This document shows, piece after piece, positions 16,232 to 39,480 of a stretch of DNA of 64,000 nucleotides. Origin of the DNA: Macrostomum lignano. Taxonomy: Eukaryota. Location: contig NIVC01002460.1 of assembly GCA_002269645.1 (NCBI GenBank), positions 108,161 to 172,160 of the forward strand, in the 5' to 3' direction. A model generated the notes under the pieces. The model made no database searches and was not told the origin of the DNA. It saw only the letters and a program-made list of their open reading frames with translations. Position numbers and translations under genes: made by a program. The first letter of the stretch is position 1. Each line of letters begins with the position of its first letter.

Positions 16232-19200
16232 ATGCAGGTTCGTGCGCCGCTAATAGCTGCTGTTCATTCTCTTGGAGATTAAATTTTTTGCTTGAGTCGT
16301 GCATATAGTAGCGTCTGTTTTACCTTCCTAAAGAATTCACCTAGCTAGTGAGAATCGCCCTCTCTCTCCCTATGAGAATGGTTCTCCCTCCCTATGAGAA
16401 TCGCCCTCTCTACCTATGAGAATCGCCCTCTATCTATGAGAATCGCCCTCTCTATCTATGAGAATCGCCCTCTCTCCCTATGAGAATCGCCCTCTCTACC
16501 TATGAGAATCGCCCTCTCTACCTATTAGAATCGCCCTCTCTCTACCTATGAGAATCGCCCCCCTCTCTCCCAATGAGAATCGCCCTCTCTCTCCCTATGA
16601 GAATTGCCCTCTCTCTCCCTATGAGAATCGCCCTTTCTACCTATAAGAATCGCTCTCTCTACCTATGAGAATCGCCCTCTCTCTCCCTATAAGAATCGCC
16701 CTCTCTACCTATTGGGTTCCCATCTCTCCCTATGAGAATCGCCCTCTCTTCCTATGAGAATCGCCCTCTCTACCTATGAGAATCGCCCTCTCTCCCTATG
16801 AGAATCGCCCTCTTTACCTATGAGAATCACCCTCTCTACCTATGAGAATCGCCCTCTCTATCTATGAGAATCGCCCTCTCTATCTATGAGAATCGCCCTC
16901 TCTCCCTATGAGAATCGCCCTCTATCTATGAGAATCGCCCTCTCTATCTATGAGAATCGCCCTCTCTCCCTATGAGAATCGCCCTCTCTACCTATGAGAA
17001 TCGCCCTCTCTACCTATGAGAATCGCCCTCTCTACCTATGAGAATCGCCCTCTCTCCTTATGAGAATCGCCCTCTCTACCTATGAGAATCACCCTCTCTA
17101 CCTATGAGAATCGCCCTCTCTATCTATGAGAATCGCCCTCTCTCCCTATGAGAATCGCCCTCTCTACCTATGAGAATCGCCCTCTATCTATGAGAATCGC
17201 CCTCTCTATCTATGAGAATCGCCCTCTCTCCCTATGAGAATCGCCCTCTCTACCTATGAGAATCGCCCTCTCTATCTATGAGAATCGCCCTTTCTACCTA
17301 TAAGAATCGCCCTCTCTCTCCCTATGAGAATCTCCTCTCTCCCAATGAGAATCGCCCTCTCTACCTATGAGAATCGCCCTCTCTACCTATGAGAATCGCC
17401 CTCTCTTTCTATGAGAATCGCCTTTTCTACCTATAAGAATCGCCCTCTCTCTCCCTATGAGAATCTCCTCTCTCCCAATGAGAATCGCCCTCTCTACCTA
17501 TGAGAATCGCCCTCTCCCGATAGAGTTTAAGTTGCTGCCGCCGCATTCATTTGCTCAGGTGTACAGCCTGAAAGCGCCGCAGGCGGCAGTCCGCGGCGTA
17601 GACGAAGTGGCTGGCAGCCTGCGCACCAGCCTGCGCGACGGTCTGTCCCAGGCCGAAGCCGACGTCCGCCTTCGCCGCTTCGGCCCGAACGAGATCGAAT
17701 CGCCGCCAGACGATCCGCTTTGGCAGAAATATTTGGAACAGTTCAAGGATCCGATGATTCTGTTGTTGCTATGCTCGGCGGTTATTAGTCTGCTCATGCG
17801 GCAGTTTGATGACGCTGTCAGCATCTCTTTGGCTATCGTTATTGTTGTCACTGTTGCCTTTATTCAAGAATACAGGTAAGACTAGTATGCTCAGACATCA
17901 AGTGTGCTCAGACATCAAGTGTGCTCAGATATCCAGTGTGCTCAGAATCCCGTGTGCTCAGTTTCAGATATCCAGTGTGCTCAGAATCCCGTGTGCTCAG
18001 CTTCAGATATCCAGTGTGCTCAAATATTCAGTGTGCTCAGATATCCAGCTAGTGTGCTCAGATATCCAGTGTGCTCAGAATCCCGTGTGCTCAGCTTCAG
18101 ATATCCAGTGTGCTCAAATATTCAGTGTGCTCAGATATCCAGCTAGTGTGCTCAGATATCCAGCTAGTGTGCTCAGATATCCAGCTAGTGTGCTCAGATA
18201 TCCAGCTAGTGTGCTCAGCCTCAGATATCCAGTTTGCTCAGAATCCCGTGTGCTCAGCTTCAGATATCCAGTGTGCTCAGGATCTCAGAATCTCAGAATT
18301 TTGTGCTCCAGAAATTCCAGATAAAATGTTGTTTCTAAAAATAGACCATGACGTCATCCTTCCTCACCGTGGCACACCAGATCCGAAAAGGCTCTTGGCG
18401 CTCTAAAAAAGCTGGTGCCCTACAAGTGCTACTGTCTCCGGTCGGGTATACTGCAGTTCCTATACGCCCGCGACCTAGTTCCTGGCGACATTGTACACCT
18501 GAACGTCGGCTGTCGGGTTCCGGCCGACCTGCGCGTGTTCGAGTCCACCGATCTGCGCATCGACGAAGCCAGTTTCACCGGCGAGACCGACCCGGTGTTG
18601 AAGTCCGCCACGCAGCTGCACGAGTCAAATGTTAGCACTGGGGGCTCCGTTGTTGGGATGAAGAACTGCGCTTTCACTGGCACCCTTGTCAGGTGAGAGG
18701 TCCTGATTTATTACTCAACTCCAGATTTATGCGTCTCATTATTGCTTGGATTATTGCATAATTTATGACCTAGATTACTGTATGATTTATGACCCAGATT
18801 ATTGTATTATTTATGATCCAGATTATTGTATGATTTATGACCCAGATTATTGTATTATTTATGATCCAGATTATTGTATGATTTATGACCGAGATGACTG
18901 ATTTATGACCGAGATGACTGTATGATTTATGATCCAGATTATTGTATGATTTATGACCCAGATTATTGTATTATTTATGATCCAGATTATTATATGATTT
19001 ATGACCGAGATGACTATGATTTACGACCGAGATGACTGTATGATTTATGATCCAGATTATTGTATGATTTATGACCCAGATTATTGTATGATTTATGACC
19101 CAGATTATTGTATTATTTATGATCCAGATTATTATATTATTTATGACCGAGATGACTGTATGATTTATGATCCAGATTATTGTATGATTTATGACCCATA

Positions 19201-20893
19201 TTATTGTATTATTTATGATCCAGATTATTATATGATTTATGACCGAGATGACTACGATAGATTATTGTATGATATATAATCCATCCAGATTACTGTATGA
19301 TTTATGATACAGATTACTGTATGATTTATGAGCCAGATAGATTACTGTATGATTTATGACCCAGATCATTGTATGATTTATGATCCAAATTACTGTATGA
19401 TTTATGACCCAGATTACTGTATGATTTATGATCCAAATTACTGTGTATGATTTATGATCCAAATTACTGTATGATTTATGACCCAGATTGCTCTATGATT
19501 TATGACCTAGGTTACTGTATAATCAATTACCCACAATAATGTATGATTTATGAGCCCTAATTATTGCATAAATTATGAATTATTATTACATAATGATGAC
19601 CAGGAATTAGTATTATATCTGTAATTAATAACTCACTCTGCCGCAGGTGCGGCACAGGCAAGGGCATAGTGATCTGCACAGGCGAGGAGAGCGCATTCGG
19701 CGACATATTTCGCGCCATGCAAGAAGAAGAGGCGCCAAAAACTCCGCTGCAACGCAATATGGATCGATTAGGCAAGCAGTTGAGCTTCTACAGCCTGTGC
19801 ATCATTGTTGGCATTGTCATTATTGGCCTGCTGCAGCGCCGGCAGATGCTGGAGATGTTTCAGATTGGCGTCAGTCTGGCTGTAGCGGCCATACCCGAGG
19901 GCCTGCCGATTGTGGTGACCGTCACCCTGGCCATCGGGGTCATGCGAATGGCCAAGAGAAACGCTATAGTGAAAAAGTTGCCAGTAGTTGAAACTCTGGG
20001 CTGCGTTAACGTGGTCTGCTCGGATAAGACTGGCACCTTGACTCAGAATGAGATGACTGTGACCAGGCTGATCACCTCCGACGGCCTGGCAGCCACGGTT
20101 AGCGGCGTCGGCTATGCGGCTGCTGGAGACGTGGTTGCCGAGGCTAACGGTGCCAGACTGACTGCCAGCTCCACCGTGGCCTTGCGCTGGCTCTGCCTGA
20201 CCGCCTCCTGCTGCAATAATGCCGAGATTCGGGGCAACGAGCTGCACGGACAGCCCACTGAGGGAGCCTTGGTGGCTCTGGTTAACAAGGTGTGTGCTGT
20301 GTATGTGTGCAGGCTGTGTGTGCTGTCTGTGAGTGCTGTCTGTGTGTGCTGTCTGTGTGTGTGCTGTCTGTGTGTGTGCTGTCTGTGTGAGTGCTGTCTG
20401 TGTGTGTGCTGTCTGTGTGAGTGCTGTCTGTGAGTGCTGTCTGTGAGTGCTGTCTGTGTGTGCTGTCTGTGTGTGTGCTGTCTGCTTGTGCTTTCTGTGA
20501 GTGCTGTCTGTGTGTTTGTGCTGTCTGTGTGTGTGTGCTGTCTGTGTGTGTGTGCTGTCTGTGTGTGTGTGCTGTCTGTGTGTGTGCTGTCTGTGTGAGT
20601 GCTGTCTGTGAGTGCTGTCTGTGAGTGCTGTCTGTGTGAGTGCTGTCTGTGTGTGTGCTGTCTGCTTGTGCTTTCTGTGAGTGCTGTCTGTGTGTGTGTG
20701 CTGTCTGTGTGTGTGTGTGCTGTCTGTGTGTGTGCTGTCTGTGTGTGTGTGCTGTCTGTGTGTGTGTGCTGTCTGTGTGTGTGCTGTCTTTGTGTGCTTG
20801 TGCTTATGCTGTCTGACTGTCTGTCTGTCTATGTCTGTCTGTCTGTGTGTCTGTCTGTCTGTCTGTCTATGTCTGTCTATGTCTGTCTGTCTG

Positions 20894-20926
<33 letters not shown>

Positions 20927-20959
20927 GACTTTCTGTCTGTCTGTCTGTCTGTCTGTCTG

Positions 20960-21008
<49 letters not shown>

Positions 21009-21121
21009 GACTTTCTGTCTGTCTGTCTGTCTGTCTGTCTGACTTTCTGTCTGTCTGTCTGTCTGTCTGTCTGACTTTCTGTCTGTCTGTCTGTCTGTCT
21101 GTCTGACTTTCTGTCTGACTT

Positions 21122-21152
<31 letters not shown>

Positions 21153-21157
21153 GACTT

Positions 21158-21216
<59 letters not shown>

Positions 21217-21221
21217 GACTT

Positions 21222-21272
<51 letters not shown>

Positions 21273-21293
21273 GACTTTCTGTCTGTCTGTATA

Positions 21294-21328
<35 letters not shown>

Positions 21329-21331
21329 GCC

Positions 21332-21366
<35 letters not shown>

Positions 21367-21369
21367 GCC

Positions 21370-21408
<39 letters not shown>

Positions 21409-24400
21409 GTTTGTCTGTCTGTCTGTCTGTCTGTCTGACTGTCTGTCGCTATCTCCACCCTGACTCCACCACCCCATGGCTGTCATTCGCAGCTGAACGC
21501 CGATCGCCTGAAGCAGGACTACAGCCGCATCCAGGAGTGGCCATTCAACTCCGACACCAAGCTGATGACGGTGAAATGCGAAAGAAAATCTTCTGCAGTA
21601 GATAACTCTGCGGTGAGTGAATATCGGGTCAATGTGAATGATGATGAGTATTTGTAAAAGGCGGTGTTTTGAGATTGAAATGTTTTCAATACTCGTATCT
21701 TGTCTAGTAACTAAGCCGACGTATTTTTTGTGTTTTTTTAGCCAAGAAGATTGGTAAGTATCAGAAGCTGCAGTCCCTAGAGTTAGAATTAGAATATCCT
21801 TTGCCCAATCTTCTTAGGGCGTTGATTGTTTGTTTGTCATCTGAAAGTTTATTCGAATCCTTAAAAATTTGTTTAATGATTTTTATTAGACTGATTTTTC
21901 TATTAATCATATTGTGCAAAGTGTCCGATATGAGCAAGTTCTTAACCGACTGCTCAGGACTGATTCTCTGGGTTCGATTCGCAGCCATGAAGGGCGACTC
22001 TCAAGCTCAGAGACTGTACATGCCCGATGATTAGAAAGTCACAAGGAGCCTCTGTACACCTGCGTGAGCGTGTGTGTGAGTGCGTGCCTGCGTACAGTAC
22101 TGGCGCGCAACGGCAACCCACCAGCTAACTAAATGGATCGGGGAGGGGCATCGGCAACCCACCAGCTAACTAAATGGATCGGGGAGGGGCAGCGGCAACC
22201 CACCAGCTAACTAAATGGATCGGGTGGGGGCAGTCCCGGCAGCGGCAACCCACCAGCTAACTAAATGGATCGGGTGGGGGCATCGGCAACCCACCAGCTA
22301 ACTAAATGGATCGGGTGGGGGCATCGGCAACCCACCAGCTAACTAAATGGATCGGGTGGGGGCAGTCCCGGCAGTGGCAACCCACCAGCTAACTAAATGG
22401 ATCGGGTGGGGGCAGTCCCGGCAATGGCAACCCACACCCGGTACACCCTGTGTGAGCGTGTGCACGAGTGCGTGCCTGTGTACAGTATTGGCACGCTTGT
22501 TTGGCAAATGCCATTGGCCTAGCTAAAACCCAAAGGTAAGAATATTTTACATTGATGAAGAGCCAGCATCTCTGCCCCACCACAAAACCACTGGCAGGAC
22601 CTGCCAACAACTGTATTCTTTGTCAAAGGCGCGCCAGACCGACTGGTTCGCGCCTGCACCAGCTACTGGAACGAGCGCGGCCAGCTAGAGTCCATGACCT
22701 CCGGGCAGGAGACCCGGATCAACGACTGGGCTGCCCAGCTGGGGGTGGGCGGCCTCCGCGTGCTGGGACTCGCCTGCGGACCCGACCAGCAGAATCTGAC
22801 CTTCTGCGGCCTAGTTGGATTGCTAGACCCGCCTAGGCCAGGCGTTAAAGACTCGATACGCTTTTTGCAGCAATCTGGCGTGCTAGTTACTATGATAACC
22901 GGCGACGCTATGGAGACCGCTTGCACGATAGCTCGCCAACTGGGCATCTCAGGCGGCACTGGACAGCCAATCAGCGGCGAGCAGCTGGACCAAATGCAGC
23001 CGGACGATCCGCGTATACCGGAGACGCGCATCTTCTATAGGACCAGCCCTAGGCACAAGAACAAAATTGTGCGGGCTTTCCAGGTTGGCCTCTCGCTCTC
23101 TACCCACTCTACCCCGCTCTCTACCCCGCTCTCTACCCACTCTACCCCGCTCTCTACCCAATCTACCCCGCTCTCTACCCACTCTACTCCGCTCTCTACC
23201 CAATCTACCCCGCTGTCTACCCACTCTACCCGCTCTCTACTCACTCTACTCCGCTCTCTACCCACTCTACCCTTCCCTTTATCACTCTACCCCGCTCTAC
23301 CACTCTACTCTGCTCTCTACTCACTCTACCCTACTCTACTCACTGTACCCCGCTCTACGACTCTTCTCCGCTCTCTACCCACTCTACCCCGCTCTCTATT
23401 CACTGTTTTCCACTCTACCCACTCTATCGAATTCTCTACCCACTCTGGCCAACATTCTATTACCTGTTCCGATTTCTACTCACTAATTTACTTTAAAATC
23501 TATTCCCTGCTTATCCTACTGCACTCCCTCACTCTCTACCTACGGCGTACCCTCTATCGCAATCTATCTACTGAAATCCTGCCAAACCACCGCCACAGGC
23601 CGTCGGCAAAGTGGTGGCCATGACAGGCGACGGAGTGAACGACGCCGTAGCCCTGAAAGCCGCCGACATTGGCATCGCCATGGGCATGATGGGCACCGAG
23701 GTGTCCAAGGAGGCGGCCGACATGATCTTAATAGACGATCACTTCCAAACCATCTTGGCCGCGGTCGAGGAGGGCAAAGCAATATTTCACAATATTCGCT
23801 GCTTTATCAGATTTCAATTGTCTACTAGCATAGCCGCTCTGACTCTGGTCACCATGGCAACGGTGTTCAATTTGCCGAGCCCGTTGAATGCGATGCAAAT
23901 CCTGTGGATTAACATCTTGATGGACGGGCCGCCGGCTCAATCGCTCGGCGTTGAACCGCTGGATCCCGATTTGCGAAAGAAGCCGCCAAGGAGGCCCTCC
24001 GACTCCGTGCTGCCCATGGAGCTGCTGCTGGGGGTGCTGCGGTCCGCCCTCATCATTGTGGCCGGCACCCTGTTCGTGTTCCACCGGGAGATGAGCGACA
24101 ATAAGGTGGGCTGCTCCGCCATCACTGATGCCTCTCGGGTCGTCAGAATGGGCCACGGCCAGCCTCCCAGATCCTCAGTTGCTGCTGGGCCAGCCTCCCA
24201 GATCCTCAGTTGCTGGGCCAGCCTCCCAGATCCTCAGCTGCTGGGCCAGCCTCCCAGATCCTCAGTTGCTGGGCCAGCCTCCCAGATCCTCAGTTGCTGG
24301 GCCAGCCTCCCAGATCCTCAGTTGCTGGGCCAGCCTCCCAGATCCTCAGTTGCTGGGCCAGCCTCCCAGATCCTCAGTTGCCGGGCCAGCCTCCCAGATC

Positions 24401-27400
24401 CTCAGCTGCTGGGCCAGCCTCCCAGATCCTCAGTTGCTGGGCCAGCCTCCCAGATCCTCAGTTGCTGGGCCAGCCTCCCAGATCCTCAGTTGCTGGGCCA
24501 GCCTCCCAGATCCTCAGTTGCTGGGCCAGCCTCCCAGATCCTCAGTTGCTGGGCCAGCCTCCCAGATCCCCAGTTGCTGGGCCAGCCTCCCAGATCCTCA
24601 GTTGCTGGGCCAGCCTCCCAGATCCTCATTTGCTGCTGGGCCAGCCTCCCAGATCCTCAGTTGCTGCTGGGCCAGCCTCCCAGATCCTCAGTTGCTGCTG
24701 GGCCAGCCTCCCAGATCCTCAGTTGCTGCTGGGCCAGCCTCCCAGATCCTCAGTTGCTGGGCCAGCCTCCCAGATCCTCAGTTGCTGCTGGGCCAGCCTC
24801 CCAGATCCTCAGTGTCTGGGCCAGCCTCCTAGAGTGTCAGTTGCTGGGCCAGCCTCCCAGATCCTTAGTTGCTGGGCCACCCTCCCTCCCAGATCCTCAG
24901 TTGCTGGGTCAGCCTCCCAGATCCTCAGTTGCTGGGCCAGCCTCCCAGTTCCTCAGTTGCTGCTGGGCCAGCCTCCCAGATCCTCAGTTGCTGGGCCAGC
25001 CTCCCAGATCCTCAGTTGCTGGTCCAGCCTCCCAGATCCTCAGTTGCTGGGCCAGCCTCCCAGTTCCTCAGTTGCTGCTGGGCCAGCCTCCCAGATCCTC
25101 AGTTGCTGGGCCAGCCTCCCAGATCCTCAGTTGCTGGGCCAGCCTCCCAGAGTGTCAGTTGCTGGGCCAGCCTCCCAGATCCTTAGTTGCTGGGCCACCC
25201 TCCCTCCCAGATCCTCAGTTGCTGGGTCAGCCTCCCAGATCCTCAGTTGCTGGGCCAGCCTCCCAGTTCCTCAGTTGCTGCTGGGCCAGCCTCCCAGATC
25301 CTCAGTTGCTGGGCCAGCCTCCCAGATCCTCAGTTGCTGGGCCAGCCTCCCAGAGTTTCAGTTGCTGGGCCAGCCTCCCAGATCCTCAGTTGCTGGGCCA
25401 GCCTCCCAGTTCCTCAGTTGCTGCTGGGCCAGCCTCCCAGATCCTCAGTTGCTGGGCCAGCCTCCCAGATCCTCAGTTGCTGGGCCAGCCTCCCAGATCC
25501 TCAGTTGCTGGGCCAGCCTCCCAGATCCTCAGTTGCTGGGCCAGCCTCCCAGATCCTCAGTTGCTGGGCCAGCCTCCCAGATCCCCAGTTGCTGGGCCAG
25601 CCTCCCAGATCCTCAGTTGCTGCTGGGCCAGCCTCCCAGATCCTCATTTGCTGCTGGGCCAGCCTCCCAGATCCTCAGTTGCTGCTGGGCCAGCCTCCCA
25701 GATCCTCAGTTGCTGCTGGGCCAGCCTCCCAGATCCTCAGTTGCTGCTGGGCCAGCCTCCCAGATCCTCAGTTGCTGGGCCAGCCTCCCAGATCCTCAGT
25801 TGCTGCTGGGCCAGCCTCCCAGATCCTCAGTGTCTGGGCCAGCCTCCTAGAGTGTCAGTTGCTGGGCCAGCCTCCCAGATCCTTAGTTGCTGGGCCACCC
25901 TCCCTCCCAGATCCTCAGTTGCTGGGCCAGCCTCCCAGATCCTCAGTTGCTGGTCCAGCCTCCCAGATCCTCAGTTGCTGGGCCAGCCTCCCAGATCCTC
26001 AGTTGCTGCTGGGCCAGCCTCCCAGATCCTCAATTGCTGGGCCAGCCTCCCAGATCCTCAGTTGCTGGGCCAGCCTCCCAGAGTGTCAGTTGCTGGGCCA
26101 GCCTCCCAGATCCTTAGTTGCTGGGCCAGCCTCCCAGTTCCTCAGTTGCTGCTGGGCCAGCCTCCCAGATCCTCAGTTGCTGGGCCAGCCTCCCAGATCC
26201 TCAGTTGCTGGGCCAGCCTCCCAGATCCTCAGTTGCTGGGCCAGCCTCCCAGATCCTCAGTTGCTGGGCCAGCCTCCCAGTTCCTCAGTTGCTGCTGGGC
26301 CAGCCTCCCAGATCCTCAGTGTCTGGGCCAGCCTCCCAGATCCTCAGTGTCTGGGCCAGCCTCCTAGAGTGTCAGTTGCTGGGCCAGCCTCCCAGATCCT
26401 TAGTTGCTGGGCCACCCTCCCTCCCAGATCCTCAGTTGCTGGGCCAGCCTCCCAGATCCTCAGTTGCTGGGCCAGCCTCCCAGATCCTCAGTTGCTGGGC
26501 CAGCCTCCCAGATCCTCAGTTGCTGGGCCAGCCTCCCAGATCCTCAGTTGCTGGGCCAGCCTCCCAGATCCTCAGTTGCTGGGCCACCGCCAGTCACCCA
26601 GATACCTTCCTGTCACTGCATTAATCACTATCCATTTACAGGTGACTCCCCGCGACACCACCATGACGTTCACCTGTTTCGTACTATTCGACATGTTCAA
26701 CGCTCTGTCCTGCCGTTCAAAATCAAAGAGCATCTTCACCATCGGTCTGTTCTCCAATCGGACCTTCTGCATAGCCGTGGGTCTGTCCCTCATCGGCCAG
26801 CTGCTGGTCATCTACGTGCCCCCGTTTCAGGCGATCTTTCAGACTGAGGCTCTCTACGCTACTGGTGAGTTTCTTATGTCTAAATAGTTCTCTCTCTATC
26901 GTATTATTTTTCAATCAAATCTTTCTAAAAATGAACTTCATTTATTCAATCTTATTTTATGCTAACTCTCGATTAGTTGCTGACGAAGTTTTCTTTCTTC
27001 TTATAAGTAAAAGTGAAGAAGTAAGGGCCGCTGTACACTCCTGTGTGAGTGTGTGCCTGTGCGTATGACTGCGTACGTATCCGCGCGCTTGTGTGCCTGC
27101 TCAGGGGAGTCGGCGGAATGGGCAGCAATGCCTCTCGCTGGTTGTGTGACAATGTCGCTTAAAGTGCGTCAGGGTGCACATTGGCAGCTGCCTCTAATTA
27201 AATAAAGTAGCCCAGGTCCCAGGGCTTGCGTAATACTTTTTATTTCTTTCAATTATTTGACATTTCCAGTAGAATCAGCGTGCAAATTTTGCTAACAGTG
27301 GACTCAACATTCTGTTTTATCTATTATGTAATTACTCGTAACAGTTTAATTTAATATTACTTGAAGTTGCCTTGGCACGTTGGTTTTTATTAGGTAATCT

Positions 27401-28272
27401 TCATTTTCACTGCTCTCTATATTTATATCTTTATGTTATTCTGAAATATAATTATAAACCTGGGTTCAGAGAGAGCAGCGGCAACCCACTACCTAAATTA
27501 AGATCAGGGGAGGGCAGCGGCAACCCACCAGCTAACTGAATGGATCGGGGAGGGCAGCGGCAACCCACCAGCTAACTAAATGGATCGAGTGGGGGCAGCG
27601 GCAACCCACCAGCTAACTGAATGGATCGGGGGAGGGCAGCGGCAACCCACCAGCTAACTGAATGGATCGGGTGGGGGCAGCGGCAACCCACCAGCTAACT
27701 GAATGGATCGGGTGGGGGCAGCGGCAACCCACCAGCTAACTGAATGGATCGAGTGGGGGCAGCGGCAACCCACCAGCTAACTGAATGGATCGGGGGAGGG
27801 CAGCGGCAACCCACCAGCTAACTGAATGGATTGGGTGGGGGCAGCGGCAACCCACCAGCTAACTGAATAGATCGGGGGAGGGCAGTGGCAACCCACCAGC
27901 TAACTGAATGGATCGGGTGGGGGCAGCGGCAACCCACCAGCTAACTGAATGGATCGGGGGAGGGCAGCGGCAACCCACCAGCTAACTGAATGGATCGGGG
28001 GAGGGCAGCGGCAACCCACCAGCTAACTAGATGGACCGGGGAGAGTTCAGATAGGTTATTTATAAATCTAGAACTATAATAACTAAAAGCTCAAAGTGGT
28101 CACTCGCATTGCAGACCTGCTATTCCTGGTGTGCCTGTGCTCCACAGTGTTCTGGATCTCGGAGCTGGCCAAGCTGATGCACCGGCATCATTACAATTTC
28201 AGTCGGGCAGCCCTATCGCTAATTGGTTTTAATAATCGTCGGTCAACTAAATTTTCTGACAGTATTGTGTGA
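16232..28272 (+). CDS. ATP2C1: Secretory pathway Ca2+/Mn2+-transporting P-type ATPase (SPCA/PMR1), ~923 aa, 9 coding exons
   Basis: join(16232..16237 tentative MQ,17559..17875,18381..18692,19647..20289,21493..21612,22598..23083,23599..24105,26642..26864,28115..28272). All junctions are GT-AG with matching phases and the total of 2772 nt is in frame. Motifs: [22 protein letters not shown] (phosphorylated Asp), [51 protein letters not shown]. Colinear with human SPCA1. Confidence 0.95.
16348..17519. repeat. ~22-bp minisatellite CTATGAGAATCGCCCTCTCT(C/A)C in SPCA intron 1
   Basis: Tandem periodicity. Confidence 0.95.
17886..18300. repeat. AGTGTGCTCAGATATCC-core minisatellite in SPCA intron 2
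   Basis: Compound tandem repeats. Confidence 0.9.
18760..19560. repeat. 24-bp minisatellite GATTATTGTATGATTTATGACCCA in SPCA intron 3
   Basis: Tandem periodicity. Confidence 0.9.
20290..21447. repeat. (CTGTCTGTGTGTGTG)n grading into (CTGT)n in SPCA intron 4
   Basis: Simple repeat starting at the donor GT. Confidence 0.95.
22111..22436. repeat. 41-bp minisatellite CGGCAACCCACCAGCTAACTAAATGGATCGGGTGGGGGCA(T/G) in SPCA intron 5
   Basis: ~7 copies, flanked by ~55-bp direct repeats at 22054-22108 and 22441-22496. Confidence 0.9.
23092..23560. repeat. CTCTACCCACTCTACCCCG-type pyrimidine-rich repeat in SPCA intron 6
   Basis: Degenerating ~21-bp repeats. Confidence 0.85.
24158..26590. repeat. 28-bp minisatellite GCTGGGCCAGCCTCCCAGATCCTCAGTT (~85x) in SPCA intron 7
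   Basis: Tandem periodicity; stop-free on +; source of the 918/546/566-aa ORFs. Same family as 45770-46850. Confidence 0.97.
27027..27165 (+). repeat. Short dispersed repeat (GGGCCGCTGTACACTCCTGTG...GAGTCGGCGGAATGGGCA...ATGTCGCT)
   Basis: Near-identical copy at 43560-43668; partial copies at 22054, 22441 and ~2165-2228 (minus strand). Confidence 0.75.
27476..28042. repeat. 41-bp minisatellite (same family as SPCA intron 5) in SPCA intron 8
   Basis: ~13 copies of CGGCAACCCACCAGCTAACTGAATGGATCGGG(T/G)GGGGGCAG. Confidence 0.93.
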
Positions 28273-28821
28273 TCGAGAAACCTATCTATAGTACTAATAG
28301 AATTCATTAGTAGACTATATTGAGTTTCTGTAACTTATTTCTATAATTTTAGCATAATACGATTAGAAAAAAACTATTATTATCGAAGATTGAACAGTTA
28401 AAAATGTATCTTTCCAGATAATAAAGGACACGCGTGTACTTTAATTATTGATTTATTATATTGTTGTCTATGCACACAGTTCTGTCGGCTGCTAATCTAT
28501 TATTCTATCATATCCTCTCGATCATGTTTTTATTGCATATCTTTATATAACTGCTGCGCTTACAAAACCTTTGATATTTTGCTTTATGGAACTGAATAGA
28601 GAGAGCACCGGCATTGTCTGCTAAATGGCATCCAGTTTGGCGTCTCTAGATTTATAGCTTTTCATTTGTGTGATGTGTCTGATTTTTCATGACAATTTAT
28701 GTGTCATTTTTCACTGCTTCTGCGGGAATGCAAATGATGGACATGCGTGTAGTGCTTCATCGGTTGATTGGTTGATTAATATGTATTATATTTTTGTTGC
28801 TGACTTGACCACAGCCTCTTC

Positions 28822-30728: not shown

Positions 30729-31305
30729 ATCAGTTAGCTAGGCAGTTAGCTAGTCAGTTAGCTAGACAGTTAGCTAGTCAGTTAGCTAGACAGTTAGCTA
30801 GACAGTTAGCTAGTCAGTTAGCTAGTCAGTTAGCTAGACAGTTAGCTAGTCAGTTAGCTAGTCAGTTAGCTAGTCAGTTAGCTAGTCAGTTAGCTATACA
30901 GTTAGCTAGTCAGTTAGCTATACAGTTAGTTAGTAAGTTAGCTAGTCAGTTGGCTAGACAGTTAGCTATACAGTTAGCTAGTCAGTTAGCTATACAGTTA
31001 GCTAGTCAGTTAGCTATACAGTTAGTTAGTAAGTTAGCTAGTCAGTTAGCTATACAGTTAGCTAGTCAGTTAGCTAGACAGTTAGCTAGTCAGTTAGCTA
31101 TACAGTTAGCTATACAGTTAGCTAGTCAGTTAGCTACACAGTTAGTTAGTCAGTTAGCTATACAGTTAGCTAGTCAGTTAGCTAGTCAGTTAGCTACACA
31201 GTTAGTTAGTCAGTTAGCTATACAGTTAGCTAGTCAGTTAGCTAGACAGTTAGCTAGTCACTTAGCTAATCAGTTAGCCAGACAGTTAGCTAGTCAGATA
31301 GCTAG
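30729..31305. repeat. 12-bp minisatellite CAGTTAGCTA(G/T)(T/A) immediately upstream of the PARL start
   Basis: Tandem periodicity; source of the (QLAS)n ORF. Confidence 0.95.
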
Positions 31306-31346
31306 TATTTATAGTACACCAGACGAACTTGCACACTTTCTGCGGC

Positions 31347-34028
31347 ATGCAGACCCCATACGGTAGTCGAATTTGCCATTGCTGCCGTGCCTGCAGCCGC
31401 CGACTGCTCACTGTCCTGCTCAGCTTGCCCCGGCCGCCCTCCCTGCAACCTGGTCGGCGATATTTTAACGTGAATAAGTCGGCCGTCTCCGATGCCCGCC
31501 AGCCGCTGACGAATGCCCAAGATTTTGCCCGCGCCTTTTTGGCGCCCTACCGTCTGACGGAGAGCGCCAGACGGTTGGCCTGGCGCGGCCGGGCATTCTG
31601 GGCGCTGGTGGCTTCCGGCACCGCGTATGGGATCTGCCGGCTGTGGGAGACTCACCAGGCTAAGAAGTCTGATCCCAACAGCCTGTACCTGCCGTTCATG
31701 GGGGTACAGGTGAGCTGACTTGGGGAGGGTATTGCAGCAGCTCACTGGCAGAATCAGGGAGGGTATTGCAGCAGCTCACTGACAGAGAATCAGGGAGGGT
31801 ATTGCAGCAGCTCACTGACAGAGAATCAGGGAGGGTATTGCAGCAGCTCACTGACAGAGAATCAGGGAGGGTATTGCAGCAGCTCACTGACAGAGAATCA
31901 GGGAGGGTATTGCAGCAGCTCACTGACAGAATCAGGGAGGGTATTGCAGCAGCTCACTGACAGAATCAGGGAGGGTATTGCAGCAGCTCACTGACAGAGA
32001 ATCAGGGAGGGTATTGCAGCAGCTCACTGACAGAGAATCAGGGAGGGTATTGCAGCAGCTCACTGACAGAGAATCAGGGAAGGCATTGCAGCAGCTCACT
32101 GAGGCAGAATCAGGGAGGGTATTGCAGCAGCTCAGACAGAATCAGGGAGGGTATTGCAGCAGCTCACTGACAGAATCAGGGAGGGTATTGCAGCAGCTCA
32201 CTGACAGAATCAGGGAGGGTATTGCAGCAGCTCACTGACAGAATCAGGGAGGGTATTGCAGCAGCGCACTGACAGAGAATCATGGAGGGTATTGCAGCAG
32301 CTCACTGACAAAATCAGGGAGGGCATTGCAGCAGCTCACTGACAGAATCAGGGAGGGTATTGCAGCAGCTCACTGAGGCAGAATCAGGGAGGGTATTGCA
32401 GCAGCTCAGACAGAATCAGAGAGGGTATTGCAGCAGCTCAGACAGAATCAGTGAGGGTATTGCAGCAGCTCACTGAGGCAGAATCAGGGAGGGTATTGCA
32501 GCAGCTCACTGAGGCAGAATCAGGGAGGGTATTGCAGCAGCTCACTGACAATCAGAGAGGGTATTGCAGCAGCTCAGACAGAATCAGTGAGGGTATTGCA
32601 GCAGCTCAGACAGAATCAGTGAGGGTATTGCAGCAGCTCACTGAGGCAGAATCAGGGAGGGTATTGCAGCAGCTCACTGAGGCAGAATCAGGGAGGGTAT
32701 TGCAGCAGCTCAGACAGAATCAGAGAGGGTATTGCAGCAGCGCATTGACAGAGAATCAGGGAGGGTATTGCAGCAGCTCACTGACAGAATCAGGGAGGGC
32801 ATTGCAGCAGCTCACTGACAGAATCAGGGAGGGTATTGCAGCAGCTCACTGACAGAATCAGGGAGGGAATTGCAGCAGCTCACTGACAGAATCAGGGAGG
32901 GAATTGCAGCAGCTCACTGACAGAATCAGGGAGGGTATTGCAGCAGCTCACTGAGGCAGAATCAGGGAGGGTATTGCAGCAGCGCACTGACAGAATCAGG
33001 GAGGGTATTGCAGCAGCTCACTGACAGAATCAGGGAGGGTATTGCAGCAGCTCACTGACAGAATCAGGGAGGGTATTGCAGCAGCTCACTGACAGAATCA
33101 GGGAGGGTATTGCAGCAGCTCACTGACAGAATCAGGGAGGGTATTGCAGCAGCTCACTGAGAGTGAATAAATTAAGATATCCTTAGCTTGGCTACTGTCA
33201 GTAGGCTGATGCAGACGCATTTACAATCTCTATCAAATTCCAACGCAGCCCGGGCTGTCCCGCTGGTCCCTGCTTGGCCCGTACGCAGTCGTCCTGATGC
33301 TGAGCAGCTGCGTGTTTGCCGCTTGGCGAATCTTCGGCCTGGCCTCGCTGCAGCCCGCCGCCGCCGCCGCCGCTGCCGCTGCGGCCGGGTCTCGGATTTC
33401 TCTGCTAGGCGCTGAGAATTTCCTTCGCCTATTCGCTGACAAGCCGGGCCTCGGTCCCACTGTCAGGGCCTTCTCCCGGCCGCTGCTCAGCCCGCTGGGA
33501 TCGGCTCTGAGTCATCGGACAGTCGGGCACTTCCTAGCCAGCCAGCTGGTACTTTTTGGCGCCCTAACCAGCTGCATTGGCAAAATGTCGCCGGGCGAAT
33601 TCGTTGCCTTCTCCGTAGCGGCGGCCTACGCTACCAGTTTGGCCAGTGTGCTGGCCATGACGCTGGCCAATCGGTTTGTGTTCAGCCTGGGCGCTAGCGG
33701 TGTACTGTCGGCTCTGGTGGCCTACAATGCGCTGACTGCCGACCAGAATGTCCAGCTCGGTCAGCAACAGGAGAGCGGCAGTAGCTCGCCATCGAGCCTG
33801 GCTCTGCTCGGTGTCATCCCGCTGCCCTGGCTGACACCGGCTGTTGGCCTGTCCGTCTGGGCCGGAGTCGAGGCCGTCAGCTGGATGGTTACCGTCTGGC
33901 GGGGTCGCCTGCCCCGGTTGAACCATCCAGCGCACCTGGCTGGCATCGGGTTCGGCTGTCTGTATGCTGTGTGGGGCCACCAGGCTCTGTGGTCGGCGCA
34001 CCCTGTGCCGCGGCTGCGGCTGCCTTAG
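31347..34028 (+). CDS. PARL: PARL-type mitochondrial rhomboid protease, 380 aa, 2 exons
   Basis: join(31347..31709,33249..34028), phase 0, CAG|GTGAGC ... AACGCAG|CCC. Arg-rich presequence-like N-terminus; TM1 ending VFAAWRI; SHRTVGHFLAS; catalytic SLGASG (Ser 33696-98); LNHPAHLAG (His 33933-35); YAVWGHQALW matches the PARL C-terminal YVTYGHELIW. Confidence 0.85.
31720..33160. repeat. 34-36-bp minisatellite GGGAGGGTATTGCAGCAGCTCACTGACAGAATCA filling the PARL intron
   Basis: ~41 copies, starting ~10 nt after the donor. Confidence 0.97.
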
Positions 34029-34117
34029 GCGACCGCTCTGTCTGATAACTGATTGGCTGCTGTGTCCGTATTGTGCCATGTGGATGTCAGTTCTGTGTCC
34101 GTATTGTGGCATTTTGT

Positions 34118-34885
34118 CCTCACCATCTGCCCTGTGTCCTCTCACTGTGTCCTCACCATCTGCCCCTGTGTCCTCATCATCTACCCTGTGTCCTCACCAT
34201 CTGCCCCTGTGTCCTCATCATCTAATCTGTGTCCTCACCATCTGCCCTGTGTGTCCTCTCGCTGTGTCCTCACCATCTGCCCTGTGTCCTCATCATCTAC
34301 CCTGTGTCCTCACCATCTGCCCCTGTGTCCTCATCATCTACCCTGTGTCCTCACCAATTGCCCTGTGTCCTCACAATCTGCCCTGTGTCCTCACCATCTG
34401 CCCTGTGTCCTCACAATCTGCCCTGTGTCCTCATCATCTACCCTGTGTCCTCACCATCTGCCCTGTGTCCTCACAATCTGCCCTGTGTCCTCACCATTTG
34501 CCCTGTGTCCTCACCATCTGCCCTGTGTCCTCATCATCTACCCTGTGTCCTCACCATCTGCCCTGTGTCCTCACCATAGCTGCCCTGTGTCCTCATCATC
34601 TGCCCTGTGTCCTCACCATCTGCCCTGTGTCCTCACCATAGCTGCCCTGTGTCCTCACCATCTGCCCTGTGTCCTCACCATAGCTGCCCTGTGTCCTCAT
34701 TATCTACCCTGTGTCCTCACCATCTGCCCTGTGTCCTCACCATAGCTGCCCTGTGTCCTCACCATCTGCCCTGTGTCCTCACCATAGCTGCCCTGTGTCC
34801 TCACCATCTGCCCTGTGTCCTCACCATTTGCCCTGTGTCCTCACCATCTGCCCTGTGTCCTCATCAACTACCCTGTGTCCTCACC
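34118..34885. repeat. ~20-bp minisatellite CCTCACCATCTGCCCTGTGT
   Basis: Tandem periodicity. Confidence 0.95.
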
Positions 34886-35292: not shown

Positions 35293-35830
35293 GTCCCTCT
35301 CTCCCCACCCTCTCCCACCTTCTCCATGTGTTCTCACCCTCTCCCTGTGTTCCCACCTTCCCACCTTCTCCATGTGTCCTCACCCTCTCCCTGTGTTCCC
35401 ACCTTCCCACCTTCTCCATGTGTCCTCACCCTCTCCCTGTGTCCCCACCCTCTCCTGTGTCCCCACCCTCTCCCTGTGTCCCCACCCTCTCCTGTGTCCC
35501 CACCCTCTCCTGTGTCCCCACCCTCTCCCTGTGTCCCCACCCTCTCCCTGTGTCCCCACCCTCCCCTCTCCCTGTGTCCCCACCCTCTCCCTGTGTCCCC
35601 ACCCTCTCCCTGTGTCCCCACCCTCTCACTGTGTCCCCACCCTCTCTACTGTTTCCTCACCCTCTCCCTGTGTCCCCACCCTCTCCCTGTGTCCCCACCC
35701 TCTCACTGTGTCCCCACCCTCTCTACTGTTTCCTCACCCTCTCCCTGTGTCCCCACCCTCTCTACTGTTTCCTCACCCTCTCTGTTTCCCCACCCTCTCT
35801 ACTGTTTCCTCACCCTCTCCCTGTGTCTCC
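35293..35830. repeat. 19-bp minisatellite CACCCTCTCCCTGTGTCCC
   Basis: Tandem periodicity. Confidence 0.93.
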
Positions 35831-35948
35831 ACTCTCTACGGTGGGAGCAGCCAGCAGCCACCCAGATCCCATTGCAAAGAGTTGGCATGGCAACAACATT
35901 TCAGGCATAGGAAATTCTCGCACCTGTCTAACATCAGCAGCTGCTGCT

Positions 35949-38126
35949 ATGCCGATCTTCCTCTGCCTCTGCTGCCGCAGCCGGCTCTTGCTCGACTTAG
36001 CCAGCGGCTCCCTCCCGCTGCTCCGGCCGAGTCGCCGCTGTCTGAAGGCGTCGCCGCGGCCTTCGCCGAACGGGCAGCAACAGCAGCAGCGGGGGCAGCC
36101 GAAGCCCAAGCTGTTCTTCAGGCGCATCGGCCAGCTGGCGGAGTCGCCGGTTTCAACCGAGCCGCTGTCGCTGTCAGCCGGAGGCCACGCCTTCCAGCTG
36201 GCCGCCAGGGCCGTCGCAGCCCTGGCAGTGGGCGGCCTGGTGTCCGTGATGGTCAGCGAGCGTCGGAACCGTCACCGACGCGACTGTGCCAGTCAGCTGA
36301 GTCAGTACGACCTGGGCTACGTTGGCATTCAGGAAGACGACGGCTTGGACAAGATTGTCCAGGATTTAAGATGGACATCGCCTGCCCTGCTCTACTGCGG
36401 CCTGGCGCTGGCCATCCACAGCCTGCTGGGCTCCAGGCGGATGCCGCTTGATAAGCTGGCCAAGCTCAGCCGGCATGCGCTGGACCAGCCCGGCAGGTGG
36501 GCCCTGCTCTGTGCCCTTTTAGTGCCTTTTCAGTGCCCTTTTATAGTGCCTTTTTAGAGCCCTTTTAAGTGCCTATTTAGAGCCCTTTCTAAGTGCCTTT
36601 TCAGTGCCCTTTTAGTGCCTTTTAGAGCCCTTTCTAAGTGCATTTTTAGTGCCCTTTCTCAGTGACTTTTTAATGCCCTTTCTCGGTGCCCGTTCAGTGC
36701 CCTGTCTCAGTGCCCTTTCTCGTTTTCTTTCTTGGTACGTTTCCCAGTGTCCTGTGCCTTTCTAAATGCTTTGTCTTTGTCATGTGTCCAACTCTAGTGA
36801 GTGCCCCAGTGCCTGTGCCCTACTCTGCCCATCCTCAGTGCCCATTGTTGTCAGTGTCCAAGACTGCATCAGGCACCACGGGTCTTCAATGCCAACAATG
36901 TCCATTGCTGTTCTACCGCACTGGACACTTCTTAGCTTACCTGTGCACCCACCGATCCCTGCCTCAACCAGGTCGGCCATCCTGACTTCTCCCTGGTTGA
37001 GTTCGGTGTGCGAATTTCAAGTTTTTGGATTCTTATCCACCATCAGCGCACTGAGTCTGTTGAGCACACTGAAGTTCGGCTTATCGCCCGAGGAAAAGGT
37101 TGGCTGCATTTTGCTGCTTTTGCTATTGTAGGCGTAACAGGTGTTCCGGTTACCTGGTGACGGTGCCCTGGGGTGCAGGTGTTCCGGTTACCTGGTGACT
37201 GGGTGCCCTGGGGTGCAGGTGTTCCGGTTACCTGGTGACTGGGTGCCCTGACGTTCAGGTGTTCCGGTTACCTGGTGGCTGAGTGCCCTGGGGTGCAGGT
37301 GTTCCGGTTACCTGGTGGCTGAGTGCCCTGGGGTGCAGGTGTTCCGGTTACCTGGTGGCTGAGTGCCCTGGGGTGCAGGTGTTCCGGTTACCTGGTAGCT
37401 GAGTGCCCTGACGTTCAGGTGTTCCGGTTACCTGGTGGCTGAGTGCCCTGACGTTCAGGTGTTCCGGTTACCTGGTGGCTGAGTGCCCTGGGGTGCAGGT
37501 GTTCCGGTTACCTGGTGACTGGGTGCCCTGGGGTGCAGGTATTTAATCCCAGAGCACCTTTACAACTCAGCCACAGGCGGCAGACCCTAAGAGTTATTAC
37601 CCCAATCCGAATACAGATTCTGGCCTTCATCGCCGGCTCGCTGACCGGCTCAGCATTTCGCTGCGCCTATCAGCAGTCTCTGCTGCTGCTCAGCAGGGAG
37701 CGCCGGCCGCTGGGCCACTGGTGCGGTCCGCACGCCGGCCTGGCTGCTCTGGTCGCCTTGCACCTGCTCTCTCTGAGAAGCGTCACTGCCAAAGTGCAAC
37801 AGCAAAGCCAGCTGGGACAGGAGGAGCCGGCATTCGCTCGATCTGTTCGGCGAGACTTTCTCGAGTTTCGGTATGGGCTGTGCTCAGCTCTGCTGATTGG
37901 CTGGGCAGCCTTCAACCTGGTCTTCTTGGTGCGCTATCGCCGGTTGCGGGCGCCGGTGTTGGGCCCGGCGGCACCGGCTTTGAAGCACGCCTCCACCCTG
38001 GCGGGACTGGCCGCCGCCTGCGGCATTCACGCCGCTATTGAGTACAGAACTCAAGCAGTTGCTGAGCTGCCTGCGGCCTCAGACTCAGCTCCCCAACCTG
38101 TTCCGGCTGCAACACCTGCTGTTTGA
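35949..38126 (+). CDS. PARL-like rhomboid pseudoprotease (catalytically dead tandem paralogue), 394 aa, 3 exons
   Basis: join(35949..36496,36972..37098,37617..38126); phases 2 and 0 match; 1185 nt in frame. Ungapped local alignments to the upstream PARL: SPWLSSVCEFQVFGFLST vs SPLGSALSHRTVGHFLAS; LSPEEKILAF vs MSPGEFVAF; CGPHAGLAALVA vs LGASGVLSALVA; LKHASTLAG vs LNHPAHLAG. Confidence 0.75.
37137..37541. repeat. 40-bp minisatellite GGTGTTCCGGTTACCTGGTG(A/G)CTG(G/A)GTGCCCTGGGGTGCA in pseudoprotease intron 2
   Basis: ~10 copies. Intron 1 also carries degenerate AGTGCCCTTT repeats at 36515-36720. Confidence 0.93.
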
Positions 38127-38289: not shown

Positions 38290-39480
38290 TCTCTCTGACT
38301 CCGATATGGTTTGCAGTCTTCTTCGTTCTGGAAGACCGTGGAGTCTGCCAGTGTGCTGGGCAATAACGCGGCCGTCGATTATGATGCAGACCCCAAAGCC
38401 GGCGTGGCCGTGTAACAATGGACCTCCTGGAAACTCTAGCATCCCTTGAGGGGATATGATGACCATGTAGCGCTGAAAGAGGTTGAGAGTGTGGGTTTCA
38501 CCGTCAGACAAGACGTGGAGCCCGCCGCCGTCTCTCAAGTCTTCGAGGCAGAGGTGGACGTGAGTCGAGGCAAGAGCTTGCGCTTAGCCATGGCTTTATG
38601 GGGCAGGAAACGAATGCCAGCGTCAATCCGTCCAACGGAGGATGGTCCGCTGAGTCGGACCAAGGTGGATTGTGAACTTAGGCGTCCAGCGCTTAGCCCA
38701 GGCGTCAGAGAGCACTAGGATCACCGTAGCCCCCTTCTCCTGTGGCGTGTTGTAGGAGCCTGTTGATCTCGAGGTCAGGGTGCAGCTTTAGCAGGATCTG
38801 CCTAAGCTGATCTCCGGACTTAATGGCACTGACGGCCGGGATCCAGACGTGAAAGCGTAAGGTCTTTTGTCGCTCGCCCTCGCTGTCGAAGACGAGCTTG
38901 CCGAGCTTCTTGGGCCAGTTCAGTTTTGGCTGAAGCTCGCGTAGACTGCGGCTGCTCTCCTAAGAGTTGCACCAGATGAAGATGCGCTGGTCAATGAGCG
39001 CAGTATCAATTAATGGTGCGCCAGGCACTGTCGAGCTCATCGGCAGTGATCGGTCTCGCTCTTCCCCGAAGACGATGACCGCCGGTTGGAGCGTGACCTT
39101 TTGAGGCGTAGTTGGTGGCGGCGGTTCCCGAAGGCCCGGCCGCGCTGGTTGCAGGTTTGCTGGGTATCTCACCTGCGGGGGTTGTGTCCTAGGGACAGGG
39201 GTCGCTGTGGCTCCTCTCGGCCCAACAGCAGCCTCGCCCTCCCAGGTTCCCCTCCGCAGGTGGCCGTCCCACAGCTTCCCGTTGTTGCCGTCGCCGCTCA
39301 TTGCAGCGTTGGTTGCAAGCACGTAGGGCCTCCGCAGAGGGCCCGGGTGCGCGTGCGGACTTGTCACCAGAGTGACCAGACGAACCGACGACGATCGCCC
39401 GCGCGTCTGCCCCCGGTAGGACGGCGCTGGCGCCAAAGTCACCGGCCGGACCACAGTAGCCTGAAAGTTCTCACACGACA
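38290..39480 (-). mobile_element. Degenerate non-LTR retrotransposon (LOA/I-group-like): ORF1-like segment joined to an RNase H remnant
   Basis: Frameshifted minus-strand translation gives RFHVWIPAVSAIKSGDQLRQILLKLHPDL...KGATVILVLSDAW (resembles LOA-clade ORF1, DUF4780-like), then HAGFGVCIIIDGRVIAQH...DSTVFQNE (LINE RNase H G-x-G-V...STVFQAE). Confidence 0.6.

Follow-up and report, generated by a model that had tools for sequence, protein, structure and literature searches.

The 64-kb window of Macrostomum lignano contig NIVC01002460.1 considered here (the whole stretch of DNA that was analysed, whose numbering is used for all positions) contains a PARL-type rhomboid gene and, starting 1,920 bp downstream of the end of its coding sequence (CDS) on the same strand, a second gene, whose product is termed the candidate below. 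This second gene is a real, lineage-restricted gene for a polytopic membrane protein. Its start codon ATG is at 35949, and its CDS of 1185 nt, spread over three exons, comprises 394 codons and a TGA stop; both introns are GT-AG and the reading frame is without stop or frameshift. The spliced protein is identical (100%, end to end) to GenBank PAA57665.1; the candidate is already in GenBank, as the 'hypothetical protein' BOX15_Mlig011814g1. The GenBank annotation of the M. lignano assembly was derived from RNA sequencing (RNA-seq) and transcript assemblies by means of StringTie, TACO and TransDecoder (PMC5730564), and since it contains the identical spliced protein, both candidate junctions are independently transcript-supported. 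A first-pass annotation, made from the letters of the window, had described an intact open reading frame (ORF) of three exons and 394 aa without stops or frameshifts, and had proposed RNA-seq confirmation of junctions 36496/36972 and 37098/37617; its model is exact, and the junctions have the support just mentioned. When 1.84 billion cluster representatives were searched exhaustively with phmmer, M. lignano sequences only and no relative elsewhere were returned, so that the candidate is known from this species only.

A second M. lignano locus (L001, on NIVC01000309.1) has the same pair of PARL and candidate, and the order ATPase-PARL-candidate is kept there. Between the two loci the candidate differs by 13 synonymous and 6 non-synonymous substitutions (19 in all) and by one in-frame Leu codon, with the 394-codon spliced frame intact at both. 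The resulting ratio of non-synonymous to synonymous substitution rates (dN/dS) is 0.165 (binomial p 1.8e-4 against neutrality), close to the 0.155 of PARL between the same two loci. Exons are 97–99% identical, and introns and flanks 92–97% (93.8% for candidate intron 1, whose lengths differ). The candidate is intact, transcribed and under purifying selection, and the possibility that dN/dS would reveal a pseudogene, raised in the first-pass annotation, fails at this value.

The upstream neighbour, PAA57664.1, is 380 aa long and has a single intron after codon 121. It matches the Pfam domain PF01694 Rhomboid with 30.6 bits (E 4.5e-7), scores 27.6 bits with a hidden Markov model (HMM) of 18 vertebrate PARLs, is 25–30% identical to vertebrate PARLs across 72–92% of the core, and in alignment with pig PARL stands at z 17–25 above shuffles. 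It carries GASG, HPAHLAG, a PARL-like C-terminal WGHQALW and the extra N-terminal helix. These features mark the upstream gene as a true rhomboid of the PARL type, and the tandem arrangement with PARL reported earlier, about 1.9 kb apart on the same strand, is upheld. Codon 219 of the window copy of PARL (33540-33542) is Ser (HFLASQL) at the oxyanion-hole Asn position of HxxxN in transmembrane helix 2 (TM2), the position at which the canonical Asn is present in the L001 copy (~5754-5756; HFLANQL). Catalysis may be weakened in one or other of the M. lignano PARL copies. At L001 6239-6265 the PARL stop TAG reads GAG, which adds 8 residues (EATALSDN). The frame of this copy is intact, yet it has no called gene in GCA_002269645.1.

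The features of the two genes and of their surroundings are collected in Table 1. Exon 1 of the candidate codes the basic N-terminal region, helix A (~81-102), helix 1 (~143-162) and most of the next loop, and exon 3 codes the hydrophobic helices 3 to 6, a loop rich in Gln and a tail rich in Pro and acidic residues. The annotated candidate transcript starts 1-3 nt past the AG (35903-35904) of tttcAG, a possible acceptor for trans-splicing of a spliced leader (the frequency of trans-splicing in M. lignano is given in PMC5730564). There is no comparable AG at the annotated start of PARL (31344), and PARL and the candidate are annotated under different transcription-unit ids. At the other end, UniProt model A0A1I8IKH2 splices from a GT at 38121, just before the candidate stop, to an exon at ~38319-38400 (SSSFWKTVESASVLGNNAAVDYDADPKA...), which represents an alternative 3′ end or else an exon or gene further downstream that is missing from the annotation. 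The literature searched makes no mention of the candidate gene, and the papers and two supplement sets searched by gene id hold no expression data for it.

Table 1. Features of the PARL-candidate pair and its surroundings (window numbering)
Feature	Position	Strand	Remarks
Cytochrome P450 ORF	51-1631	-	uninterrupted, 526 aa
P-type cation-transporting ATPase exons	~17800-28300	+	directly upstream of PARL
PARL-type gene, exon 1	31347..31709	+	codons 1-121; basic N-terminus with ICHCCRACSRRLL, helix A; PAA57664.1
PARL-type gene, exon 2	33249..34028	+	six-helix rhomboid core with LSHRTVGHFLAS, GASG, HPAHLAG, WGHQALW
Candidate, short 5′ leader of annotated transcript	35903..35948	+	annotated partial CDS from 35907
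Candidate, exon 1	35949..36496	+	codons 1-183, the last partial; 98.9% nt identity to L001 8043-8590
N-terminal Cys/Arg/Leu motif CLCCRSRLLL	35964..35993	+	codons 6-15; common to PARL; BLASTP E 0.054
Candidate, intron 1	36497..36971	+	GT..AG; ~24-bp-unit minisatellite at 36511-36719
Candidate, exon 2	36972..37098	+	remainder of codon 183 through codon 225; helix 2 (hydrophobic), LSPEEK loop
Candidate, intron 2	37099..37616	+	GT..AG; 40-bp-unit minisatellite at 37138-37540
Candidate, exon 3	37617..38126	+	codons 226-394 and TGA; 98.0% identity to L001, one in-frame extra Leu codon
G262-P263-H264-A265 (GPHA)	37725..37736	+	GASG counterpart as read in the first-pass annotation; catalytic Ser position not Ser
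G266-L267-A268-A269 (GLAA)	37737-37748	+	GASG counterpart in the MAFFT register; catalytic Ser position not Ser
H349-A350-S351-T352 (HAST), then LAGLAAACG	37986..37997	+	putative counterpart of PARL HPAH-LAGIGFG; Thr at the catalytic His position; block BLASTP E 0.29
AATAAA	38184..38189	+	probable poly(A) signal, read from sequence only; 58 nt past candidate stop
Minisatellite arrays, six	30730-31306, 31723-33160, 34115-34885, 35304-35837, 36511-36719, 37138-37540

The candidate and its neighbour are alike in layout. In both proteins (394 and 380 aa) the first 80 residues form a basic N-terminus (net charge +9 and +11), followed by seven hydrophobic helices, the first of which begins at residue 81 in each (81-102 in the candidate, 81-99 in PARL); in the first 60 residues of the candidate there are 12 Arg/Lys and 1 Asp/Glu. 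Hydropathy peaks are at 95, 153, 207, 232, 274, 323 and 359 in the candidate and at 90, 136, 224, 251, 271, 313 and 356 in PARL, and hydropathy cross-correlation over a range of +/-150 peaks at lag +4, with r 0.42 for the neighbour and 0.46 for pig PARL. The loop charges of both proteins are consistent with an N-in, seven-helix topology, and, judged from hydropathy only, the candidate has the 1+6 topology of the PARL subfamily. The patterns C.CCR and CCR..SR.LL occur at just two sites among the ~128,000 residues of the six-frame translated window, namely the starts of the candidate and of PARL (31374); the Arg/Cys-rich, presequence-like N-terminus to which the first-pass annotation drew attention (LCLCCRSRLL, compared with ICHCCRACSRRLL in PARL) is indeed a basic start, and its likeness to that of PARL is genuine. 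The Cys motif is not strictly conserved, as Cys8 of the candidate is Ser in the L001 copy. A Gln-rich TM4-TM5 loop with QLGQ is present in the candidate and in the neighbour, and vertebrate PARLs are without it.

Some alignment scores point the same way. With M. lignano PARL in the profile, hhalign gives an in-register local match between candidate 158-239 and PARL 172-252 (L1-TM2-TM3), within which candidate exon 2 falls; its E of 0.018 was equalled by 3 of 268 window-shuffles (empirical p ~0.01). The full-length semi-global score of the candidate with the neighbour, 44 versus 14 +/- 7 in shuffles, looks significant only as long as the first 30 residues are included. The best BLASTP match between the two (E 0.054) is the N-terminus, where the local alignment was equalled by 1 of 1000 full shuffles and 37 of 1000 window-shuffles, and the TM6 block, with E 0.29, does not come close to significance. 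The signals of paralogy, namely layout, N-terminal motif, shared loop, local profile match and a UniProt name taken up below, are each weak, but they are collinear and in part independent of one another. It would be a remarkable coincidence if an unrelated gene beside PARL had the strand, size, helix layout and rare N-terminal motif in common with it.

Against descent from PARL stands a series of results, beginning with the profile searches. At E <= 10 the Pfam Rhomboid model matches neither the full candidate, nor its core, nor its paralogue (P0002 and P0127 included); NCBIfam gives no candidate match; and the vertebrate PARL HMM reports the neighbour and not the candidate. In hhalign, the comparison of the candidate with vertebrate PARLs has a probability of 0.1%, and even with M. 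lignano PARL in the profile the probability is just 2.5%. Many tests were run, and a single p of ~0.01, such as that of the local match, is therefore weak; the global profile alignment found no positive score and collapsed to a trivial 13-column overlap of the ends. When the first 30 residues are removed, the significance of the semi-global score is gone (z 0.25), and the core alone against the neighbour gives z 1.1–1.4, matched by 10–14% of shuffles. Over all BLOSUM62 semi-global and local alignments, whether the core was used or the protein without its first 30 residues, z is 0.25–1.4, matched by 10–33% of shuffles. A MAFFT alignment of the candidate with 19 PARLs, with its 16 invariant columns, was dropped as evidence, as shuffled candidates fit the conserved PARL columns at least as well as the genuine sequence does. 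Compared as DNA, the genes show no similarity, and when PARLs were searched by tblastn against the six reading frames of the candidate region, no PARL-like hidden frame came to light. The introns also fall elsewhere, within codon 183 and after codon 225 in the candidate and after codon 121 in PARL, as the first-pass annotation had already noted. For an old duplicate it is, moreover, an odd pattern that the presequence should stay similar when the membrane core has been wiped out.

Structure prediction tells the same way. AlphaFold2 gave a mean predicted local distance difference test score (pLDDT) of 38.8 from a 2-sequence alignment and of 49.9 from a 21-sequence alignment that included PARLs (a run partly circular by design), and no rhomboid fold resulted from the latter. 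Foldseek of both models against the Protein Data Bank (PDB) found no rhomboid (best E 0.6), the models being too poor to exclude the fold.

A search of PDB sequences gave no candidate match, and the candidate against pig PARL in pairwise comparison has z below 0. The absent DNA similarity and the null tblastn result together rule out a recent duplication, a copy of the 5′ exon and overprinting. Among UniProt names, those of the 'Rhomboid domain-containing' entries P0003, P0004 and P0129, which are fused PARL and candidate models from an older assembly, are no evidence. The name 'Rhomboid domain-containing protein' of the candidate-only model A0A1I8IKH2 (P0127) is a weak signal for PARL ancestry that was not reproduced with Pfam-A. 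Since the candidate is not significantly alignable to any rhomboid, no rhomboid phylogeny is possible. The first-pass annotation had seen gap-free alignment of blocks to TM2-TM6 of PARL, and had suggested a rhomboid HMM search and structure prediction as checks. The blocks align no better than expected by chance (the BLASTP and z values above), the HMM search has no candidate match, and the predictions yield neither a fold of good confidence nor a match to a rhomboid. That the candidate is a dead PARL, alignable across TM2-TM6, is not demonstrated.

What can be said more firmly concerns catalysis. The TM4-equivalent, WCGPHAGLAALVALHLL, has no Ser at the catalytic position in the register of the first-pass annotation or in that of MAFFT, which are four residues apart, and the N-terminal half of this fifth hydrophobic helix (WCGPHAGLAALVA) is without Ser in any register. 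When the last helix, HASTLAGLAAACG, is aligned to HPAHLAGIGFG, Thr is at the catalytic His, and the residue before LAG is Thr in any register. In the hhalign register the TM2-equivalent, CEFQVFGFLST, has Glu197, Gly202 and Thr206 in place of His, His and Asn/Ser. No register yields a Ser-His dyad. Of the substitutions proposed in the first-pass annotation, the codons are right (Pro263 at 37728-30, His264 at 37731-33 and Thr352 at 37995-97), but the equivalences of GPHA to GASG and of HAST to HPAH hang on an unproven alignment, and MAFFT gives GLAA in place of GPHA; the same holds for the loss of both TM2 His, where Glu197 and Gly202 do stand in the hhalign register but count as replacements only by virtue of that alignment. 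Since there is no Ser/His dyad in either TM4 register and the TM2 His and Asn are replaced, the candidate is not a rhomboid protease, and, to judge from these residues, it cannot be an active one, whatever its ancestry.

That PARL was duplicated in tandem long ago, and that the candidate is the copy, diverged almost past recognition, is an evenly balanced proposition. Such a duplicate would have retained from PARL the 1+6 helix layout, the N-terminal Cys/Arg/Leu motif and the faint similarity in L1-TM2-TM3, and would have lost the Ser-His dyad, both TM2 His and the TM2 Asn. The Arg-rich, acid-poor N-terminus and the PARL-like layout suggest a location in the mitochondrial inner membrane, where, by analogy, the N-terminus would be in the matrix and the C-terminus outside. 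The protein could there be rhomboid-like but non-catalytic, binding transmembrane segments or partner proteins and leaving them uncut, a role modelled on those of iRhoms, Derlins and the TimRhom proteins. A fuller proposal is that the candidate is a PARL-derived pseudoprotease, the first in an animal: a Macrostomum tandem duplicate that kept its import to the inner membrane and became a non-cutting substrate trap or scaffold acting with or against PARL, so that a solution like that of iRhoms or TimRhoms would have evolved independently. Taken as a whole this is unlikely, and the convergent iRhom-like regulator of PARL that had been suggested earlier is speculation.

The main alternative, plausible if somewhat doubtful, is that the candidate is an unrelated orphan polytopic membrane protein that happens to lie beside PARL. 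The motif and layout would then be shared by chance or reflect convergence on a signal for targeting or anchoring, and the catalytic substitutions would be artefacts of a forced alignment between proteins rich in Ala, Leu, Gly and Ser. The failure of all standard homology tests argues for this, as do the shuffled sequences that fit conserved PARL columns as well as the real candidate does, the AlphaFold2 run that adopts no rhomboid fold when given a PARL alignment, the finding of nothing outside M. lignano by phmmer, the lack of DNA similarity together with the different exon structure, and the Cys motif that is lost in part (C8S) at the second locus. However, strand, length, number and spacing of helices, the 80-residue basic N-terminus and the rare Cys-rich start would all have to be shared by chance, and the sole hhalign match sits in the expected register. 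A transcribed but non-functional relic, whether a PARL duplicate in decay or a chance open frame in GC-rich DNA full of repeats, is very improbable: though there is no homologue outside the species, no recognisable domain and no expression data for the gene id in the papers searched, and though minisatellites pack the region and create long spurious ORFs, the 394-codon frame has stayed intact at two loci despite 19 substitutions and an in-frame indel, dN/dS is like that of the adjoining PARL, exons are conserved above introns, and the RNA-seq-based model has canonical splice sites and an AATAAA downstream.

The nearest known system is that of PARL, Rhomboid-7 and Pcp1 (mitochondrial 1+6 proteases), represented by the adjacent PAA57664.1. 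The candidate is like it in tandem site, strand, length, basic N-terminus with its motif, helix layout and weak L1-TM2-TM3 similarity, but differs from it in having no significant overall similarity, no GxSx Ser, TM6 His or TM2 His and Asn, other intron positions and no predicted rhomboid fold. We know of no PARL-derived pseudoprotease described in animals.

iRhoms are secretory-pathway pseudoproteases of 6+1 topology, in which the cytoplasmic N-terminal domain is long and a large, Cys-rich iRhom homology domain separates TM1 from TM2. The candidate would likewise be a non-catalytic relative of rhomboids, and, depending on the register, it has a Gly-Pro close to where the catalytic Ser would have been lost. 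However, its TM1-TM2 loop has just ~28 residues and no Cys-rich domain, its extra helix is N-terminal, on the opposite side from that of iRhom, and the iRhoms (iRhom1/2 and Drosophila iRhom) are readily matched by Pfam Rhomboid whereas the candidate is not. Membership of the iRhoms is rejected on these three counts, and the iRhom likeness drawn in the first-pass annotation lapses with the absence of the iRhom hallmarks. Derlins, UBAC2, TMEM115 and RHBDD2/3 illustrate that the rhomboid fold can outlast sequence similarity detectable by HMMs; they are proteins of the endoplasmic reticulum or Golgi that are widespread in eukaryotes, whereas the candidate is found in one flatworm lineage and has no match to them. 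TimRhom I and II are, to our knowledge, the only rhomboid-like proteins of the mitochondrial inner membrane described so far that have no catalytic residues. Found in that membrane in Trypanosoma brucei, they are subunits of the single TIM (translocase of the inner membrane) complex of trypanosomatids (PMC5187411). Their kinship to rhomboids is very remote, as it would be for the candidate; they have no sequence relation to it in the exhaustive phmmer search, and nothing ties the candidate to protein import.

The surroundings of the pair are rich in repeats. The six minisatellite arrays of Table 1 (units 19-40 bp, up to 42 copies) take up the sequence upstream of PARL, the intron of PARL, the spacer between the genes and the two introns of the candidate. 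The arrays vary in length from one locus to the other and give rise to spurious ORFs as long as 437 aa. The ATPase upstream of PARL has E1-E2 ATPase, hydrolase and C-terminal domains, and its annotated product is 959 aa long. The minus-strand ORF near the start of the window has a full-length cytochrome P450 domain (Pfam E 4.5e-70) and is an apparently intronless P450 gene.

The case carries a caution: by-eye alignments of membrane proteins rich in Ala, Leu and Gly can persuade, 'substituted catalytic motifs' included, yet score like shuffles. The restriction of the candidate to a single lineage also limits its general importance. iRhoms, Derlins and TimRhoms have repeatedly been found to be key regulators of the fate of membrane proteins, and M. 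lignano is transgenic, amenable to RNA interference and transparent. Should the candidate prove to be a pseudoprotease derived from PARL, M. lignano could serve to study how a PARL that does not cut affects the handling of PINK1/PGAM5-type substrates or quality control in the inner membrane.

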